Shown piece after piece: positions 52,276 through 64,000 of a stretch of DNA of 64,000 bases. The stretch is from Dimorphilus gyrociliatus (lineage: Eukaryota; Animalia; Annelida). The stretch covers positions 598,882 through 662,881 of the forward strand of contig CAJFCJ010000027.1 in assembly GCA_904063045.1 (NCBI GenBank), in the 5' to 3' direction. Position numbers and translations under genes: made by a program. The first letter of the stretch is position 1. Each line of letters begins with the position of its first letter. The notes beneath the pieces are model-generated. The model was not told the origin of the DNA, ran no database searches, and worked only from the letters and a program-made list of their open reading frames with translations.

Positions 52276-55123
52276 TGTATCTGTATATAAATGCTACACT
52301 AGTATAATTAAATAACAAAAAACGAAAGCATTTAAGTTGATTTGTACTTACGGCAAATAATCAAGATAAAGTTGCAAGTACATCTACCGACAGCGCTTAA
52401 ATTAGCCTATACTAGTCCAAACTGCCCTTTTATCTCTAAGAACTTTATTTTTAGATAGGAGTCATCTGATTATTTATTCATTCTATTTGAATTTTGCATT
52501 ACATAGGATGAAAATTTCGATTATCTTGGTTTATATATTTTCTTCGCTAGAGAACCTGGATAATATTGATGAAATATTTCCATATATAGCTTAGAAAAGG
52601 TATAAATTCACTCTTATGGTTAGTTTTCAGAGAGCTTAAAGCTTAAATGAATAAGATATACAAGTTAAATTGATAGACAGATAGATAGAAAGATAGACAC
52701 AGTATACACATAGACAGCGTTCATAAAAAAGATAGTAGCAAGAGCAAAACTGCCGAGAGTAAGCTGGCAGATTGCAAAAGAGAAAAAAAAACACATCAGA
52801 AATATATAACAGATATAAACAACATGGAAAATGTATATCTATGGTGTTCAAATCAGCTGTGTTGAAAAATATTAATTTTTTATTTAGGCCTGCATCAAAA
52901 AAAAAAATAGACTAATATTAATTAGCTAATGTATTTTTATAATATTAGTAATAATATTCTTATGTTAAACGATTATAAAGAGTTAATAACATGCAAGTAA
53001 TATAAAATAAATTATTTGAATAAATTAAAATAATGAATGTAAATATACTTTTCTTTCTAAGAATAAAGTAAGACTGTATTTAATATACGTATACTGTATA
53101 TATATATGTATATATACATTGTTTTTACAATCTAATATAGAGGAAAAATAAATATAATGCAAACTATAATCTGCTAATAATATTACTAATGCAGCACAGC
53201 TGTTATTTTAATATTAAAGGAAGATTACAAGCATCTTTATACTTATTTTTGAGGTAAAACAAGAAAAACATATAATCTTTTTCTATATAAATCATAAATA
53301 GAATAGTAGTATATAAAAGTAAATGTATACATACAGTAATAGACTAATAGATACATATATATATATAGGTCACATTAAATTTATAATTGAATTATAATAT
53401 TTCAATACTTTTTTGCTATACATAAAAAAGCATATACAGATAGGTGAGGCGAAGTTGATATTTGTCTATCATTAGCTAGATAATTAATTTCTATACTAAT
53501 TGTATTATGCCTAAAACCTTAAATATGCTTCTGAATTAATCATTTGTGTCATAAAAAGAGCATAAATTATATAACATAATATATATATATAGTATGTATA
53601 TATATAAACTATATGATATATACACATATATAATTTTCTATATATACTGTATATATATATATAAATTATTTAAATGCATTGCAGTATTGGTCATTTAAAT
53701 TGATCTCTTTTCCATCATTTATATAACTTATCGATAAAGAAAATTTGTTAAAGGTTAATTAGTCTATGTAAAGTTAACTAATTAATTCCAACAGGATTAC
53801 CAGCCTGCGTACTAATTAATAAATTGGGATGCAGATTAACTGTTTTATCTGGTGCATTGGTTTCGGCAATTCCTTTTGCCCTTTCGAATTTCTTATTGGA
53901 GAATTTTTATTATATTCTCTGTATAAGGGGAATGGTCCTAGGTGAGAAAAATTGATGAAATTATCAATAATAATCAATATTACGAGTTTTAAATGTATAG
54001 TTATTAAATATAATTATCTAACGGGCTTATTCTTTTTTCAGGATTGGGTCTTGGCTTGACTATTCTACCTTCTATTCTTATTGTACATGTCTATTTCGAA
54101 AAGAGTAAAACACTTGCTCTTTCTCTAATAATCAGCGGATCAAGCTTGGGATTAGCAATAGTTCCTTATGCTATTCTTAGATTGAAAGAGCACAGTACTA
54201 TTATTAATAATTATTCATTAATGGGTATATGTCTGCTGATGGTACCTTGCAGTTTATTTATGACTGAAAAAGGTAAAACTACATTAAAACTAACGAGAGG
54301 AATGATGGATCTTTTCGATCCAATGCTAATACATCATCAAGCGTTTTTGGTTCTGGTCGCTTGTAATTTTATATGGAGTCTGGGATCCTCTATCTTTTTC
54401 ATGTATCTGCCAGTTCAGGGATATTTAACCGGAAATGGATTAAATCGTAGCGTGTACATAATAATCGCTATTTCTATAACAATTTTCATCATCAAACCAA
54501 TGTTAACTATATTTAACCAGGCTGCAACTTTTGATCATGGTACAGCTTTTGTCTTTACAATTGTACTACCAGTTTTATTTACAACATTCTGTGGCGAAGC
54601 CAGCGTGTCGTACACTGGACAAATGGGTTACTCAATACTATTTGGAATACATGTAGCATTTTGGACTACGTACACCAGGTCAGCTAGCCAAGAGTTAATT
54701 GGTCAAGAGAACCTGGCTCTAGGCAAGGGCTTTATAATAACAAGCATCGGACTTGGTCTACTTGTTGGGCCAATATTTGCTGGTCTTTTATTAGATATGC
54801 TTAAAACAACATATTATGTCTTTTATCTCTCAGGAATGGCACTGATTTTAGCAGGTGTCATAATGCTTATTGCTAAATTAACAGGTTGTACGAATGTTTA
54901 TAGTGACAAAAAAGTAGATATAAGCGAAACAATAGCATTTGTCGATAATGCAAGCTCTACTAATTCAACTCCCACCGAGAGTATTACCTATAACGACCCA
55001 TTGGAGAGCGCTTTGTACGAAATTATGGTGTCAGGTTCAACAGTTCAGGCAAGAAGGGCAATAGCAACTTTACACATTGATTCAAAAAGAACGGATTCAA
55101 GCTTTAAAATAACAAAAGCTTAA
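51227..55123 (+). CDS. SLC16 / monocarboxylate-transporter-like MFS protein
   Basis: Exons 51227-51416, 53795-53941 and 54042-55123. KWFLVAASF, NKLGCRLTVLSG, GLGLGLTILPSILIVHVYFEK, GLLVGPIFAGLLLD and about 12 TM helices. The frame is open upstream to 51101, so a further 5' exon (ATG 50476) is possible. Confidence 0.92.
52245..52274. repeat. (TA)n microsatellite ending in TACTGTA
   Basis: Direct reading. Confidence 0.85.
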
Positions 55124-56486: not shown

Positions 56487-56672
56487 CAATTCATCCACAT
56501 ACTCAATGTCTATTGACCAGCAGAGTCACATAACCAAAAGATACTTCTAGTTCAGTAACAAATTATTGGTAAGAATTTACAAAAAAACTATTCGGATAAC
56601 AAAATCATACAAACTTTTAATAACTTTATCATTAGCAGGTTTTAACTACTAATAAATATCTCAGCTAGAAAT

Positions 56673-59600
56673 ATGTTGCCGATACCTCGGCTTTGCCTTA
56701 TCTTGCTCTTAGCAGCAACAGCTGGAGCTCTTATATTGAAAAGTCCAACAGACTCTGAAACGGTTGGACGCTCTATCCTGAAAAAAACCATTAGACCAAC
56801 AAAATATTACAAGACATTTGAATCGAAAACTTACTTCAGAAATGGAACAAATAAATATTTGATCCAAAAAGCTAAAGATGGTAGATACTTCTATAAAATC
56901 GGAAGTAGAACCTTCTATGTTAATTACTGGAAATACTCTACCAGTAAGAAAACAACACAGAAGCGTTTTGTTTCTTATAGAAGGTAAAGTAATGCCTCTC
57001 TTCCATATCCCATTATTCCCTTTATCGAGTGAAACCTTCAATGATTTCCTCTCATTCCTATACTTCATCTTTCACAGATACTACATCTACGGGGGAAAAC
57101 GTTACCTTCTACAAAAAGAAGGAAGTAGATGGTTCTTCAGAATTGGAGCTCTCAAGAGATACGTTTCTTTTGGTAACAGAAAAGTCACCTATACAAAGAA
57201 AACAATCATCAAACGCTCCAGTTACAAGAGATACATCAGAATTGGTGGTAAGAAATACGAACTCCGCAAATCAAAGAGCGGCCGTTATTATTACATCATC
57301 AACGGAAAAGCCATCTACTTGAACAGACGTGGAAAGACTACTGGTGCCAGTATCAGATACATTATGATCGGTGGCGTCAGATACCGTCTATACAAAAATG
57401 GCTTGAAATACTACATTTTGAAAAACAACAAAAAGGTTTGGTACACTTCTTCTCAGATCTCATCAATGATGAAGAGCAGCGTCAAATATCTCTACTACGG
57501 AGGTATGAAATTTCAATTACGCCTGGAGGGAAGTCGCTATTACTTCATTTACGGAAAGAGCAAACGCAAGGTTTACGTAGACAAAAATATGAAACCAATC
57601 GGTCTCGGAAGCAAAACGTTAGTAAAATCATTCCACCCAACCCTTTCAAAACATAACCACGACAATTCATTACAAACCATTCTCTTCCTACAGTTATCTT
57701 TTGGGAAGCAAATACAGATACACATTAAATAGAGGAAGCGGAAGATCTTACTACTTCTACAGAGGAGGAAGAAAATACTACACAAGAAACAGAGCCTGTG
57801 TTGCCCAAAGAAGAGCTACACCTACACTCAGAATTGGTGGAAAATCATTCTCCCTCACACGTTCCGGAAGTCATTGGATCTTTTACTTTGCAAAGAAGAC
57901 ATACCGTCTCATGAGGTAAATACAATTTGTCACCTTACTGTTTCAATCACCTAACAAATTCAAATAGTCCGCTATACCTATAACCTCTATTTGAACAGAA
58001 CAACTACTCCAAACACATATAAATTGAACTTTAACGGTAAAAACTACCAAGTCAAACTTTCTTTCGGCGGTCTTACAACACCACCAAGAACATCAATCAG
58101 AACCGCATCATTGAGAATCAATGGCAAGAGTTTCTCTTTGAGACCATCAGGATCAAACTACTATTTCCAATATGGAAAGAAACGTATTAATGTCATCCGT
58201 GATGTTAAACAAAAGGGAAGATTCTACTTCACACTCAACGGCAAGAAGACGTCATTCAACCTCTTCAGTAGCATCGGAACCATGAGCAGCTACCTCAAAA
58301 AGATGGTCATGATCAACAATGTCAAATACCCAATTCAAAAGAAATTCGGCATGTCCTATTACATGTTGAATGGAAAGAAGGTTGTTTACAATTCTTGCAA
58401 TAGATATTCCATTCCAAGATGCAGCAGAGGATCAAAATTGGTGAAAGGGAAATGCGTCGATATTGACGAATGTAAAACTAAACCATGCAAACATGGAGCT
58501 AAATGTGTTAACCAAAGAGGAGGATACAGATGCGCTTGTCCACAAGGAACAGTGTATGACTCACAAGATGGATGTCAAAAGATCCCCGATTTAGGTGAAG
58601 GATGTGCTTCCAAATCAGATATTGTCTTCGTCATGGATTCTTCCGGATCTGTTGGATCTCACAATTTTGAAAAAATGAAGAGATTTGTCTACAACATTGC
58701 TTCTAAATTCACTATTGGAAAAAACGCCATGCGTGTTTCCGTCGTCAAATACCAATCAAGAACCTACTTGGAATTCAACTTGGACAAACACTCCAGCAAG
58801 AAATCTCTCTTGGATAACATTTTGAGAATCAGATACAGAGGAGGTGGTACTGCCACTGACAGAGCCTTGAAATTCACTCGTATGACTGTATTGCCAAAAA
58901 GCAGAAAGAACACTCCAACAATCGTTGTTGTAATCACTGATGGAAGATCAAACAACCGCCGCAGAACAATCCAAGAAGCTGATGTGAGTTTTCGGAACAC
59001 TTCATAGACATTAGCATTAATATATATTTCTATCGTTATATGTTTTACAGAAAATCCTTAAGGACAAATCCGTCAAATTGATTTCTGTTGGAATCGGACA
59101 CAACTTGGATGCTGGAGAATTGAAAGCCATGGCTTCCGAACCAACAGCAAAGCATTCTTTCGCCGCCAGCGACTTCAATGCTTTGGGTGGTATCTATTTG
59201 TCTCTTGCTTCAAGAGCCTGTCAATCTGCATGTCCATCCGGCAAGAAATGCATCAAATGCAGACCAGGATATTACGAATCTGATGGAAAATGCTGTAAGT
59301 GTTATAATTGAAGGTCATAGAGAGAGTCACATTGCGATCGATTCACAAACACTACTTGACAAAAATCAATACATACTTTTTCTCTTCACACAGATTACGA
59401 TGCTTGCTTCAAAGCCGGACGTTGTAGAGGAAATGCTAAGTGTTCGAACAGAAAGAGCAGCTTCGTTTGCGCTTGTCCAGCTGGATTTGTCTACACACGT
59501 AACGGATGTGCTAAACCAAAAATCCCAAGTGGTGACAGAATCATTCTCTTCGATGATGGAGACTGTAAAGGAAAACAAAAGACATTCTACTCTGCTTCCT

Positions 59601-62600
59601 CCAACCTCGGTCCTTTCGATAACACTGCCGAGTCAGTTATGGTCAGTGGAAAGAAAATCTGGTTGTTGTACAACGGCAAATACTTCAGACACTTCTCCTA
59701 TGCCGCCCGCGCCGGAAACTGTATCAATTTGTCTTCAAGAACAAAGGTCAGCTCTTTGAGACCATATTACGGTCTAACAATCAGATGTCCAAGAGGATAC
59801 AAGAGAGAAAACAACAAATGTATCGACATCAATGAATGCGAAGACAAAGACATTTGTGTCGAAGGATCGAAATGTATCAATTATGGTGGTGGATACAGAT
59901 GCTCTTGCCCAATCGGAAACGTGTATGACAAGAGAAAGGGTTGTATTGCTGTTCCAGACATGGGAGATGGATGCGGCGCTGAAGCCGATATCCTTTTCGT
60001 TTTGGACGCTTCTGGATCTGTCAGAGCTCATAACTTTGAAGAAGTCAAGAAATTCACAGCCGAAGTTGTAAACAAAATGAAGATTGGAAAGAAAGATGTT
60101 CGTGTTGGTTTGATGACATTCGCATCTTCCGTTAGAAATAGATTCTCCTTTGCCAAGTACACAAACAAACAGAGCCTTGTTAAGGCCATCTTGAGCACAC
60201 CATACACAAGAGGAGGAACCAACACAGCTGCCGCTCTCACTTCTGCTAAGAGAGCGTTCGCTTCAGCAAGAAAGAATGTACCACACATTGCTATTGTTGT
60301 CACAGATGGAAGATCTTACAATAAGAGACTCACGTTGGCTGCTGCTAATTCACTTAAAACTGCAAAGGTAACAACATTTGCTGTTGGTGTTGGAAAGAGA
60401 TTGGACAAAGATGAATTGAAGGCCATTGCTTCCAAACCATTCGACAGTCATTTATTGGAAATTGAAGATTTCGAAGATTTGGTCAAAATTCAACCTAAAC
60501 TTGCCGTCAAGACATGCGAACGTAAGTAGAATATAGTAGGAGCAGGTTATTTTGTATTTGCAATAAAATTCATTAATAACCTTTACAGAATCCTGCAAAA
60601 AGAACTCCTGTTTCACCTGCAAAAAGGGATTCATCAAGAGAGAAAAGGAATGCTTCAGAGACTACTGTTCTATCAACAACATTTGCAAGGGTGGAGCCAC
60701 TTGTGAACTCACAGAAAAATTCTACGAATGCAAATGTCCACGACGAGGAATGGAATACGACAGACTCAAGGGATGTGTTGCTTCTTCGTTGGATGACGAT
60801 GATGATGCTGACGATGATGACAAAGAGGAAGATCCAAAGGAAGGAGTCGTTTTCTACTCTGAAGAAAACTTCAAGGGAAAACGTTGCGTTGTCAAGGACG
60901 ATGTACCAGATTTGTCCCAAATCGGATGTGATAACACTGCCGAATCCGCTATCGTGTTTGGTGGCAAGAGATGGCAACTCTATGATGACGACAAATATGA
61001 AGACGAATTGGTCATCTTGAAGCAAGGAAAATACCCAACTTTGAAGAGATACGGTGCTGATGACAAAGTTTCATCTATCAGAGATCTCCCAGAAGACGTT
61101 GACAATTGTAAACCAAACCCATGCAAAACAGGAGCAACATGCGCCGATCTCGCCAATGGTTTCAAATGTACCTGCAAAGATGATGATTTCGAATACGATG
61201 AAGCCAAAGGCTGTGTACGAAAGATAGTGAAAGAGCCAAGAGAAGGTATCATTTTGTACGATGAAGAAAACTTCAAGGGAGATTTCATCGTCGTTGAAAA
61301 GGATACTCCAGAATTATCTGAATTGAAATTTGGAGATAGAGTCGAATCATTGAAAGTTATTGGCAAGAAACATGGGAATTGTACGACAAGGGAGGATATG
61401 TTGATCCCATTGCCCGTTTCCCACCAGGAGAATACGACGTAATCAAACCAGGAAACAAGGCCAGTTCTCTCAGAGTTGCACCAAAGACATCTGACTGTAA
61501 GTAGACCATTAAAGGATTTACAAATAATCCACAATGAACATATCATTATCACTTGCATCTTTGTAACAGTGCCAATTATTGTGCCAAGAACCCATGTAAA
61601 CGTGGAGCTAGATGTTTCGGTTTGAAGAAGGGATACCGTTGCATTTGTCCATCTGGACAAAAATACTATAGAACAAAGGGATGTCAAAAACTTTTGACCA
61701 GCCCATGTGACAGCAACCCATGTAGAAAGCCAGCTAGATGTTTCCGTCGTGGTTTGACTAGATACAGATGTGTATGCAAGAGAAGTCAATATTATAGCGC
61801 AAAGGCTGGATGTGTGTCCAGACCTTGTGCCAGAAAACCATGTGGAAAAGCAAGATGTATCAACATCGGTTCACGTCATAGATGTGTTTGTCCACAAGAA
61901 GCATCTTTGATGCTAAAACCAAATCTTGCAAGAGATCTGCTACACAATTGTGCAAGAGAATTCTTGCAAAGGAAAGGCTAGATGTGTATCTCTCGGCAGA
62001 AGAATCAGATGTCAATGTGGAAGAGGATTCAGATACAACGCCAAAAAAGGCTGTGTCAAATTCAACTTCAACCCATGCTTGAAGAAACCATGCAAGGGAG
62101 CCAGATGTATGAGAAGAGGTTTCAACGGTTATAGATGTCTTTGTAAACCAGGCTTCAGATATTATGGCAAAAAGGGATGTGTGAAATACACAAGACCAAA
62201 CCCATGCTTGAAGAGACCATGTAAGGGAGCTAAATGTCTCAGAAGAGGTATTGCTGGATATAGATGTGTCTGCAAGAAGGGACTCTTCTACAACAGAACA
62301 AAGGCTGTATCAAATACAACAAGAACCATGTTCAAAGAGACCATGCAAGGGAGCCAGATGTTTGAGAAGAGGTCTTTCTGGTTACAGATGTTTGTGCAAG
62401 AGAGGATTTAGATACAATAGCAAAAAGGGATGCGTTAAATACACAAGACCAAACCCATGTTTGAAGAAACCATGCAAGGGTGCAAGATGTATGAGAAGAG
62501 GACTCTTCGGATACAGATGTGTATGCAAGAAGGGATTCAGATACAACAGAAGAAAGGGATGTATCAAGATGACCAAACCAGTCAACTTGTGCAAGAAGAA

Positions 62601-64000
62601 CTCTTGCATAGGAAATGCTAGATGTTTGACTTTGGGTAGAAGAATCAGATGCCAATGTAAGAAGGGATTCAGATACAACGCCAAATCTGGCTGCGTTAAA
62701 TACGGAAAGAACCCATGCTTGAAGAGACCATGCAAAAAATCCAGATGCATCAGAAGAGGTATCACTGGATACAAATGTTTATGTAGACCAGGATTCATTT
62801 ATCGCGGAGCTAAAGGCTGTGTGAAATATAATCCATGTGCCAAGAACCCATGTAAGAAAACTAAATGTGTGAGAAGAGGAAGATTCGGTTACAGATGTCT
62901 CTGTAAGAGAGGATTCAGATACAACAGAAAAAGGGATGCGTTAAATACACAAGACCAAACCCATGTTTGAAGAAACCATGCAAGGGTGCAAGATGCATGA
63001 GAAGAGGCATTTTCGGATACAGATGTGTATGCAAGAAGGGATTCAGATACAACAGAAGAAAGGGATGTATCAAGATGACCAAACCAGTCAACTTGTGCAA
63101 GAAGAACTCTTGCATAGGAAATGCTAGATGTTTGACTTTGGGAGAAGAATCAGATGCCAATGTAAGAAGGGATTCAGATACAACGCCAAATCTGGCTGCG
63201 TTAAATACGGAAAGAACCCATGCTTGAAGAAACCATGCAAAGGAACAAGATGCATGAGAAGAGGACTCTTCGGTTACAGATGCGTCTGTAAGAGAGGATT
63301 CAGATACAACTCAAGAAAGGGATGTGTTAAATACAACCCATGCTTGAGAAGACCATGCAAGGGAGCTAAATGCTCACACGTGGAAAATTCGGTTACAAAT
63401 GTACTTGCAAGAAGGGATTATTCTAAATATGCCGACTTGGATGTATCAAGGGCAACCCATGTTTGAGAAGACCATGCAAAGGAAGCAAATGTGTAAGAAA
63501 AGGATTGTTTGGATACAGATGTCTTTGTAAAAAGGGATTCGTCTACAACAGAGAAGAGGTTGTATCAAATTGAACAGACGCAATCCATGTTTGAAGAGAC
63601 CATGCAAGGGAGCTAGATGTGTGAGAGAGAGGACTCTTCGGATACAGATGCTTGTGCAAGAGAGGATTCAGATACAACAGCAGAAAGGGATGTGTTAAAT
63701 AACAAACCAAACCATGTGCAAAAAGACCATGTAAGAGCGCTAGATGTGTGAGACGTGGTCCTTTCGGATTCACCTGTTTGTGTAAGAAGGGATTCTACTA
63801 TCAACCAAGAAGAGGATGCTTGAAATACGGCAAGGTCAATCCATGTGCCAAGAAGCCATGTTTGAAATCTAGATGTCAAAGAAGAGGCCGTTCTGGATAC
63901 AGATGCGTCTGCAAAAAGGGATTCTTCTACAACCGCAAGAGAGGAGTATGAAATTCAACCCCTGCCGTAGAAGACCATGCGGAAAAGTTGCCAGATGTGT
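56673..64000 (+). CDS. Giant secreted cationic protein: signal peptide, K/R/Y/G repeat region, EGF, vWA x2, beta/gamma-crystallin x3, about 20 basic EGF repeats (3'-truncated; apparent frameshifts after 61370)
   Basis: Signal MLPIPRLCLILLLAATAG. Exons 56673-56983, 57078-57617, 57694-57915, 57999-58983, 59051-59294, 59394-60521, 60589-61496 and ~61570 onward. vWA DIVFVMDSSGS and DILFVLDASGS; crystallin GVVFYSEENFKG...DDKVSSIR; NPCLKKPCKGARC repeats. Confidence 0.9.
61570..64000 (+). repeat. Coding tandem array of about 120-bp EGF-like units (about 20 copies)
   Basis: Recurring aacccatgYttgaagaRaccatgcaaggg...agatacaac...aagggatgtgtNaaatac. A near-identical block of about 300 bp occurs at 62425-62725 and 62931-63229. 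Confidence 0.92.

Follow-up and report, generated by a model that had tools for sequence, protein, structure and literature searches.

A Tyr-rich, cationic repeat with a predicted beta-meander fold at the start of a giant, putatively secreted protein of the annelid Dimorphilus gyrociliatus

What kind of module is formed by the Tyr- and Lys-rich repeat units that are encoded at positions 56829 to 58395 of a 64,000 nt stretch of the Dimorphilus gyrociliatus genome (contig CAJFCJ010000027.1, positions 598,882 to 662,881 of the forward strand), and what might these units do? In the following, the whole 64,000 nt stretch is called the window, and positions are those of the window unless stated otherwise. 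The best explanation of the repeat is that it forms the N-terminal module array of a giant secreted annelid glycoprotein, most likely a glue, cocoon, or surface-matrix protein, and we hold this reading with moderate confidence. We favor it because several features occur together, namely a secretion signal, positive charge combined with abundant Tyr on a repeat that is predicted to fold, further modules of the matrix, lectin, and mucin types, and a tandem array of the gene.

Reading and translating the window revealed the four-exon start of a spliced, animal-type gene on the + strand, with an ATG at 56673 and exons through 58983. The repeat region extends over several exons and does not form a single open reading frame (ORF). 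The introns have lengths of 94, 76, 83, and 67 nt, and all of them are canonical (GT..AG). The first three introns are in phase 2, and each directly precedes the first strand of a repeat unit. For the published D. gyrociliatus genome, a size of 73.8 Mb and a median intron length of 66 bp were reported (PMC7854359). The window is AT-rich, with a GC content of 25-34%, and the value over the repeat gene is about 41%. The parts of the gene are listed below; P0001 and P0002 are fragments from a second organism that are described together with the database searches.

56673..56983, + strand: exon 1, in which the start codon and an N-terminus like that of a signal peptide are followed by a Tyr/Lys-rich lead-in and unit 1; the last codon is split after 2 nt, donor aag/GTAAAG
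56984..57077, + strand: intron 1, 94 nt, phase 2, GT..AG; the frame is restored across the intron
57078..57617, + strand: exon 2, with units 2-5 and conserved linkers; the orthologous fragment P0001 is 80% identical
57618..57693, + strand: intron 2, 76 nt, phase 2, aac/GTTAGT ... CCTACAG; P0001 diverges exactly here
57694..57915, + strand: exon 3, which encodes units 6 and 7 as well as the single Cys of the region; the orthologous fragment P0002 is 58% identical
57916..57998, + strand: intron 3, 83 nt, phase 2, gag/GTAAAT ... TTGAACAG
57999..58983, + strand: exon 4, with the last repeat units, followed by a calcium-binding EGF domain and the beginning of a VWA domain
58984..64000, + strand: rest of the gene in the window, with the end of the first VWA, a second EGF-VWA, a beta/gamma-crystallin domain and EGF, and the start of a basic EGF array (Pfam; tandem repeats of 129 and 253 nt)

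The N-terminus of the protein, up to about residue 19-22, resembles a signal peptide in that a basic residue and a core rich in Leu and Ala are followed by small residues and then by a polar stretch. At the other end of the region, Pfam places EGF_CA at residues 154-184 and VWA at residues 207-319 of the exon 4 translation.

The repeat array consists of nine full units, which were aligned over 31 columns (alignment A1), and of two half units in exon 4. The unit starts are 31-63 residues apart, typically 41-50, with linkers between the 31-residue cores. An earlier note on this DNA had quoted seven unit sequences, all of which are present in the + strand translation, and had counted about nine copies, in agreement with the number of full units. 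It had also spoken of a repeat of about 30 amino acids, a length that fits the core but not the period. The units are listed below together with their scores, obtained either with the A1 profile or with a hidden Markov model (HMM) that was built from the four units of exon 2 and then run on exons 1, 3, and 4 (exon-2-only HMM), and with the AlphaFold2 predictions discussed below, including the predicted local distance difference test (pLDDT) as the measure of confidence.

56829..56924, + strand: unit 1, row 2 of A1; 14.5 bits with the exon-2-only HMM
57079..57177, + strand: unit 2, in A1; AlphaFold2 strands, block pLDDT 77-82
57229..57324, + strand: unit 3, in A1; four AlphaFold2 strands, E51-55, 58-64, 70-74, 77-80
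57355..57447, + strand: unit 4, in A1; four AlphaFold2 strands, E93-97, 100-107, 110-115, 118-123, block pLDDT 68-88
57484..57582, + strand: unit 5, in A1; four AlphaFold2 strands, E136-140, 143-150, 153-158, 163-167
57695..57787, + strand: unit 6, the most divergent unit, in A1; 34.6 bits with the A1 profile; low AlphaFold2 confidence
57821..57913, + strand: unit 7; 15.9 bits with the exon-2-only HMM; AlphaFold2 meander, block pLDDT 74-82
58015..58074, + strand: half unit with the first hairpin only (exon 4 residues 6-25); recognized by its motif in the translation, with an A1 profile score of only -2.4 bits
58108..58200, + strand: unit 9, in A1; 19.0 bits with the exon-2-only HMM
58207..58269, + strand: half unit with the second hairpin only (exon 4 residues 70-90); 4.7 bits at profile positions 14-27 with the exon-2-only HMM
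58300..58395, + strand: unit 10, the last unit, in A1; 5.8 bits with the exon-2-only HMM and 51.6 bits with the A1 profile, of which unit 10 is itself a row

With the exon-2-only HMM, the whole-exon scores were 15.7 bits for exon 1, 15.9 bits for exon 3, and 22.4 bits for exon 4. For composition-preserving shuffles (500 per exon), the means ranged from -1.5 to -3.2 bits with a standard deviation of about 3.7, and the maxima were 7.9-8.8 bits. Thus, the scores of all three exons exceeded the shuffle maxima, showing that the repeat is beyond chance. When an HMM of the first halves of the units was applied to the second halves, these scored only 2-8 bits (shuffle p 0.015-0.17, with one miss). A composition of each unit of two related hairpins is suggested by these values, but not established.

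The composition of the region (465 residues, signal peptide excluded) is dominated by Lys (13.8%), Tyr (12.3%), Ser (9.7%), Arg (9.5%), and Gly (9.2%), whereas Asp and Glu together account for 1.9%. The scarcity of acidic residues and the presence of one Cys had already been recognized; this sole Cys is replaced in the orthologous fragment and is thus not conserved. A column profile of 15 units from the two organisms revealed which positions characterize the unit:

Position 2: Y in 10/15 units
Positions 6 and 7: G and G, in 10/15 units each
Position 10: Y/F in 15/15 units
Position 12: L/I in 15/15 units
Position 16: G in 10/15 units
Position 19: Y/W in 14/15 units
Position 20: Y/F in 13/15 units
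Position 21: F/Y in 12/15 units
Position 24: G/N in 12/15 units

In the same profile, positions 9, 14, 18, 26, and 27 are mostly Lys or Arg.

Structures were predicted with AlphaFold2 for exon 2 and exon 3 separately, with alignments of two sequences only. The exon 2 model had a mean pLDDT of 71.5 and a predicted template modelling score (pTM) of 0.29. Altogether, a four-stranded beta-meander was predicted for five of the six modelled units (pLDDT about 70-88). Units 3, 4, and 5 each consist of four strands of 4-8 residues, while unit 2 is a run of five short strands, and ten-residue blocks inside the exon 2 units have average pLDDT values of 68-88. The separate exon 3 model again contained a meander, in unit 7. 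Outside the units, a short helix was predicted between units 4 and 5, and the two longest linkers of exon 2 (residues 32-49 and 84-91) had pLDDT values below 50. It was also observed that the exon 2 linkers at 57178-57228, 57325-57354, and 57448-57483 combine low predicted confidence with conservation, and that the first of them resembles a degenerate extra hairpin.

According to these models, the unit is predicted to be an antiparallel, four-stranded beta-meander with tight GG, G-S, and N/G-G turns. With standard hairpin geometry, positions 3, 5, 10, 12, 19, 21, and 30 would be located on one uniformly hydrophobic face, and Tyr2, Tyr20, and Tyr29 together with several Lys/Arg residues on the other. 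A beta-meander had been proposed in the earlier note, which had suggested a structure prediction as a check; the prediction indeed yielded a repeated meander of short strands joined by tight turns, and not a disordered region.

Is the unit a member of a known family? Sequence and family searches were run exon by exon or with the unit profile. In Pfam, no families were found for exons 1, 2, and 3 at E values up to 1, and the repeat part of exon 4 gave only one non-significant row (DUF7675, E 0.71, 10.2 bits), the EGF and VWA models matching outside of the repeat part. A profile search of the PDB sequences gave no match at E up to 10, and the ESM Atlas gave no usable match. Word searches, which covered proteins of 0.55-1.75 times the query length, were performed with exon 2, with a profile of exon 2 and P0001, and with residues 1-135 of exon 4; they returned P0001 only, or nothing, and the repeat part of exon 4 had no match. 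P0001 is a 190-residue ORF from a Logan assembly, the one found to be 80% identical to exon 2 in the word search. The nine-unit profile was also compared with 1.84 billion representative proteins, and this search resulted in three matches, P0002, P0003, and P0004. P0002 (87 residues) is the orthologue of exon 3. In P0003 (1220 residues), six short stretches were matched, the best of which covers positions 14-25 (12/31) with a GSSYYF..GG motif and was judged to be a chance match. P0003 carries long internal repeats with a GSSYYFVNGG motif and is the only non-annelid match. The match of P0004 was due to low complexity and was rejected.

P0001 was not returned by the search of the 1.84 billion proteins, in spite of an E value of about 1e-17 that is expected for it under the same settings. 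Therefore, this library is not a complete superset, and absence from it is strong, but not absolute, evidence. In both P0001 and P0002, the similarity stops precisely at the exon ends of the window, where diverged sequence follows. This indicates that they are genomic ORFs from an orthologue whose introns are in the same positions, and that their reading frame continues into the intron. Their source is probably another dinophilid. Between exon 2 and P0001, aromatic residues are kept at 29/31 sites and Gly at 17/20 sites, and 41/46 Lys/Arg sites are still basic. As judged from these sequence comparisons, the unit can be filed under no known family and appears to be new as a sequence family. This is in accord with the earlier assessment that no family could be named, and the profile search that had been proposed along with it matched no known repeat family.

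The rest of the protein was read from the window and from a complete copy of the gene on a second contig (C126, see below). The repeat is followed by EGF_CA-VWA, EGF-VWA, and a beta/gamma-crystallin domain (Crystall) with EGF, and then by an exon of 1328 residues (L026:2324-6307, - strand). This exon encodes about 30 very basic EGF-like repeats, a Pro/Thr-rich mucin-like tract, an acidic stretch, and an F5/8 type C (discoidin) domain. The mucin-like tract is long and Pro/Thr/Glu-rich, with PTTEA and PTTPEQ repeats, and at the C-terminus a Cys-rich motif without a Pfam match is present twice. Altogether, the protein comprises well over 2,000 residues.

How could such a protein act? Each unit would form an amphipathic sheet, the invariant aliphatic/aromatic face of which must be buried against a neighboring unit or another molecule, while the other face would show about three Tyr and three to four Lys/Arg residues. 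With about ten units and a net charge of about +100, the array could bind to polyanionic or wet surfaces via electrostatics, hydrogen bonding of Tyr, and cation-pi interactions. Candidate targets would be the substratum, sulfated or mucin glycans, or the acidic and mucin-like parts of the protein itself. The Tyr residues could later be cross-linked by a peroxidase, and the downstream VWA, EGF, crystallin, mucin-like, and discoidin modules may provide cohesion as well as calcium or carbohydrate binding. For the repeat itself, it is the composition, the secretion signal, and the domain context that suggest surface binding. Dinophilid females deposit their eggs in cocoons (PMC5101659), and the egg cocoon is one candidate use of the protein.

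Several points weigh against the reading as a glue, cocoon, or surface-matrix protein. The exon 3 model did not contain a confident meander for unit 6, and a confident packing of the units against one another was not predicted (pTM 0.29 and 0.38, with two-sequence alignments), so that the stacking envisaged in the earlier note was not borne out by AlphaFold2. The linkers of exon 2 are 84% identical between the two organisms, compared with 77% for the units. Because the linkers are conserved like the units, a picture of folded beads on flexible linkers may be too simple, and the linkers may be more than mere spacers. Secretion into a glue or a cocoon is suggested by sequence features. An array of this kind, polycationic and rich in Tyr, would be just as suitable for a structural or egg-envelope matrix or for binding another polyanion. 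Lastly, no candidate for a tyrosinase (PF00264) was found in the 77.9-Mb genome, with the limitation that no control genome gave a match either, and this result would argue against a mussel-type chemistry based on 3,4-dihydroxyphenylalanine (DOPA), which had been part of the initial proposal. Matches to animal haem peroxidase (PF03098) are present on four contigs (C2, C6, C15, and C20). Therefore, cross-linking of Tyr, or a chemistry of unmodified Tyr and cations, is at least as plausible as DOPA.

The peroxidases bear also on the alternative that survives best, namely that the gene encodes a structural protein of the cocoon, the egg envelope, or the cuticle matrix, and that the Tyr-rich units are mainly substrates for peroxidase-driven di-tyrosine hardening and do not serve for binding at an interface. 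We regard this as rather unlikely. It is in line with the animal haem peroxidase genes in the genome, with the Tyr content of 12.3%, with the cocooned eggs laid by the females of the group (PMC5101659), and with the near-identical, multicopy tandem array, which suggests bulk production. However, nothing ties the gene to cocoon tissue, and a discoidin domain of the lectin type together with an extreme positive charge would suit binding at least as well. Moreover, hardening and binding are roles that are compatible with each other.

A strongly cationic, amphipathic beta structure in a secreted protein would also be expected for a polyanion-binding module of defense or clearance that acts on microbial surfaces or nucleic acids, similar to cationic beta-hairpin peptides. 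This explanation is improbable. The region is part of a protein of well over 2,000 residues that also contains modules of the matrix type and a mucin-like tract, neither processing sites nor stand-alone peptide genes were seen, and the genome has no further gene with the unit.

Comparisons at the level of the fold led to two further alternatives, both of which are very improbable. With Foldseek, no match reached an E value of 0.001 or better. The best rows had E values of 0.018-0.2 and template modelling (TM) scores of 0.17 or less, and they were enriched for choline-binding proteins, CROPs, and glucansucrase domains (Pce/CbpE, CbpF, CbpJ, Cpl-1, the CROPs of TcdA/TcdB/TcsH, and alternansucrase). 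The units could accordingly be imagined as very diverged bacterial-type hairpin repeats that bind choline, cell walls, or glucans, as in choline-binding proteins, clostridial CROPs, and domain V of glucansucrases, with a small cationic or carbohydrate ligand and a beta-solenoid fold. The choline-binding, cell-wall-binding, and CROP repeats (PF01473 superfamily) are indeed also tandem, aromatic-rich beta-hairpins with Gly turns, and a YYF-like motif followed by a Gly turn is found in both kinds of repeat. However, E values of 0.018 or worse and TM scores of 0.17 or less do not support a common fold, and no such protein was present among the 50 listed rows of the VIA second look (Z 3.9 to 2.6). 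The repeat also fails the family model: in a six-frame search of the genome at E up to 10, PF01473 (Choline_bind_1, threshold 20.5 bits) misses the gene, and its five weak matches are all on C3, C5, C6, C12, and C15, none on C27 (the contig of the window) or C126, the contigs that carry the gene copies. No Pfam family was found for the repeat at E up to 1, and no protein of this type was returned by the profile search of the 1.84 billion, mostly bacterial, proteins. In addition, the unit has 31 residues and four strands, in contrast to about 20 residues and one hairpin.

The VIA wide search and the VIA second look each had a best Z of 3.9, with a single unit matched to generic small beta-sheets or barrels (Tudor, KOW, and propeller blades). 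The presence of single blades among these weak structural matches (hemopexin, DDB1, WD, EPTP), the four antiparallel strands per unit, the typical spacing of 41-50 residues, and the conserved linkers would be compatible with about ten units that are the blades of one or two closed beta-propellers. AlphaFold2 usually closes propellers readily, but no confident packed arrangement, ring, or arc was obtained for exon 2 (pTM 0.29). Furthermore, the spacing varies from 31 to 63 residues, half units are present, the net charge of about +100 with almost no acidic residues is unlike that of known propellers, and the Z scores are below 4 and cover one unit.

How does the proposed glue, cocoon, or surface-matrix protein compare with known adhesive systems? 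In the flatworm Macrostomum, the protein Mlig-ap1 has extremely cationic repeat regions (KR-regions) on both sides of a lectin/vWD core, and polyanions block its function (PMC6410801). The flatworm ap1 and ap3 proteins (in Theama and Minona with GRK or GRKHS repeats) resemble the protein described here in being giant and secreted and in combining cationic repeats with a core of the lectin/von Willebrand/EGF type, and their cationic part is thought to act through polyanion binding (PMC6410801; PMC9229212). However, the flatworm repeats are low-complexity tracts of Gly/Arg/Lys(/His/Ser) without aromatic residues, whereas the unit of D. gyrociliatus is Tyr-rich and a predicted beta-meander. The accessory domains differ as well (vWD, C-type lectin, and TSP versus VWA, beta/gamma-crystallin, and discoidin), and no sequence similarity to flatworm adhesion proteins was found in the profile search of the 1.84 billion proteins. 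The combination of a cationic repeat with carbohydrate- or protein-binding domains in a giant secreted protein, which is typical of the ap1/ap3 type, would thus be shared as an analogy of design only.

Mussel foot proteins and the sabellariid cement proteins Pc-1, -2, -4, and -5 are likewise basic, repetitive, secreted, and rich in Tyr, Lys, and Gly, the cement proteins providing an annelid precedent (PMC4275877). By its composition and its signal-peptide-like start, the protein described here shows the basic, Tyr/Lys/Gly-rich, repetitive, secreted sequence of DOPA-type adhesives. However, the repeats of mussels and tubeworms are short, of low diversity, and dependent on the conversion of Tyr to DOPA, whereas the present units have 31 residues and are predicted to be structured. 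No sequence relationship to these proteins (mussel fp, tubeworm Pc) emerged, as the search of the 1.84 billion proteins gave only the orthologous fragment and two spurious matches. Unlike in the mussel and tubeworm glues, to which there is no sequence homology, all modules are united in one polypeptide. In the mussel byssus, EGF arrays occur in Mfp-2 and VWA domains in the byssal thread matrix protein PTMP1. The slug glue proteins Sm40 and Sm85 consist of EGF plus VWA, and the sea star protein Sfp1 of discoidin plus EGF (PMC4275877). Sfp1, Sm40, and Sm85 thus share accessory modules with the rest of the protein, that is, the context of the repeat and not the repeat itself; for these three proteins, the review lists conserved domains only and no Tyr/Lys-rich repeat (PMC4275877). 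By analogy, the repeat may be a lineage-restricted form of a known theme, the cationic aromatic modules of invertebrate secreted adhesive or matrix proteins, without homology to those compared here.

Most of what is understood about underwater glues comes from mussels, tubeworms, barnacles, sea stars, and flatworms, in which the cationic aromatic parts are short, of low complexity, disordered, and often DOPA-dependent. Here, a chemistry of Tyr and Lys/Arg with few acidic residues is found on a small unit that is predicted to fold, in a genome without a tyrosinase match. A more specific version of our reading, which we put forward tentatively and consider doubtful at present, is that the unit represents a new fold family, an autonomously folding, four-stranded meander of about 31 residues with a flat face of Tyr and cations, and that its approximately ten copies mediate DOPA-free wet adhesion or matrix cohesion in an animal apparently without tyrosinase. 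If true, it would be a structured alternative to the disordered Tyr/Lys-rich glues of mussels and tubeworms. If the role is confirmed, the unit would offer a compact sequence for testing a pre-organized Tyr/cation surface on wet surfaces and, for Dinophiliformia, a first molecular access to adhesion or to the formation of cocoons. Otherwise, it would be an ordinary, lineage-specific orphan repeat.

With the A1 profile, 36 matches were found in the whole genome, that is, nine units in each of four gene copies; the unit is thus confined to this gene within the genome and, as far as the searches indicate, appears to be restricted to this gene and one close relative. The contig of the window (C27) ends at 64000, inside the EGF array of the gene. 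Three further tandem copies, 11.4 and 13.4 kb apart, are located on the 32.7 kb contig C126 (G000:C126:1-32662; L025-L028). They are 99.5-99.7% identical to the window copy over 7.3 kb, from the ATG onward, and all four copies are fully identical from 56788 to about 59500, introns included. The locus is a tandem array of at least four near-identical genes. In all four copies, the exons across the repeat region are open and the splice sites are canonical.

In one copy on C126 (the first in reverse-complement order), the frame is shifted by a 1-bp deletion at the equivalent of position 56691 of the window, in signal-peptide codon 7. Either this copy is dead, or the deletion reflects an error of the assembly. 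In the remaining three copies the start is intact, and their signal peptides show one Leu/Val difference. That the repeat is a decaying or artefactual sequence without a coding function, as this deletion and the assembly breaks at the locus might suggest, is hardly credible, given the three copies with intact starts, the open exons and canonical splice sites of all four, and a second organism in which frames, exon ends, and core residues are kept at 58-80% identity.

The copies start to resemble one another within a few bases of the ATG. The sequences upstream of it (56560-56672 in the window and the equivalents on C126) are of three unrelated types, one on C27, one at the second C126 copy, and one shared by the first and third copies on C126. 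Because these upstream sequences are unrelated, the copies may have different promoters. Further upstream in the window, an ORF at 54044-55123 (+ strand) encodes 359 residues with many hydrophobic segments and looks like an exon of a membrane transporter.

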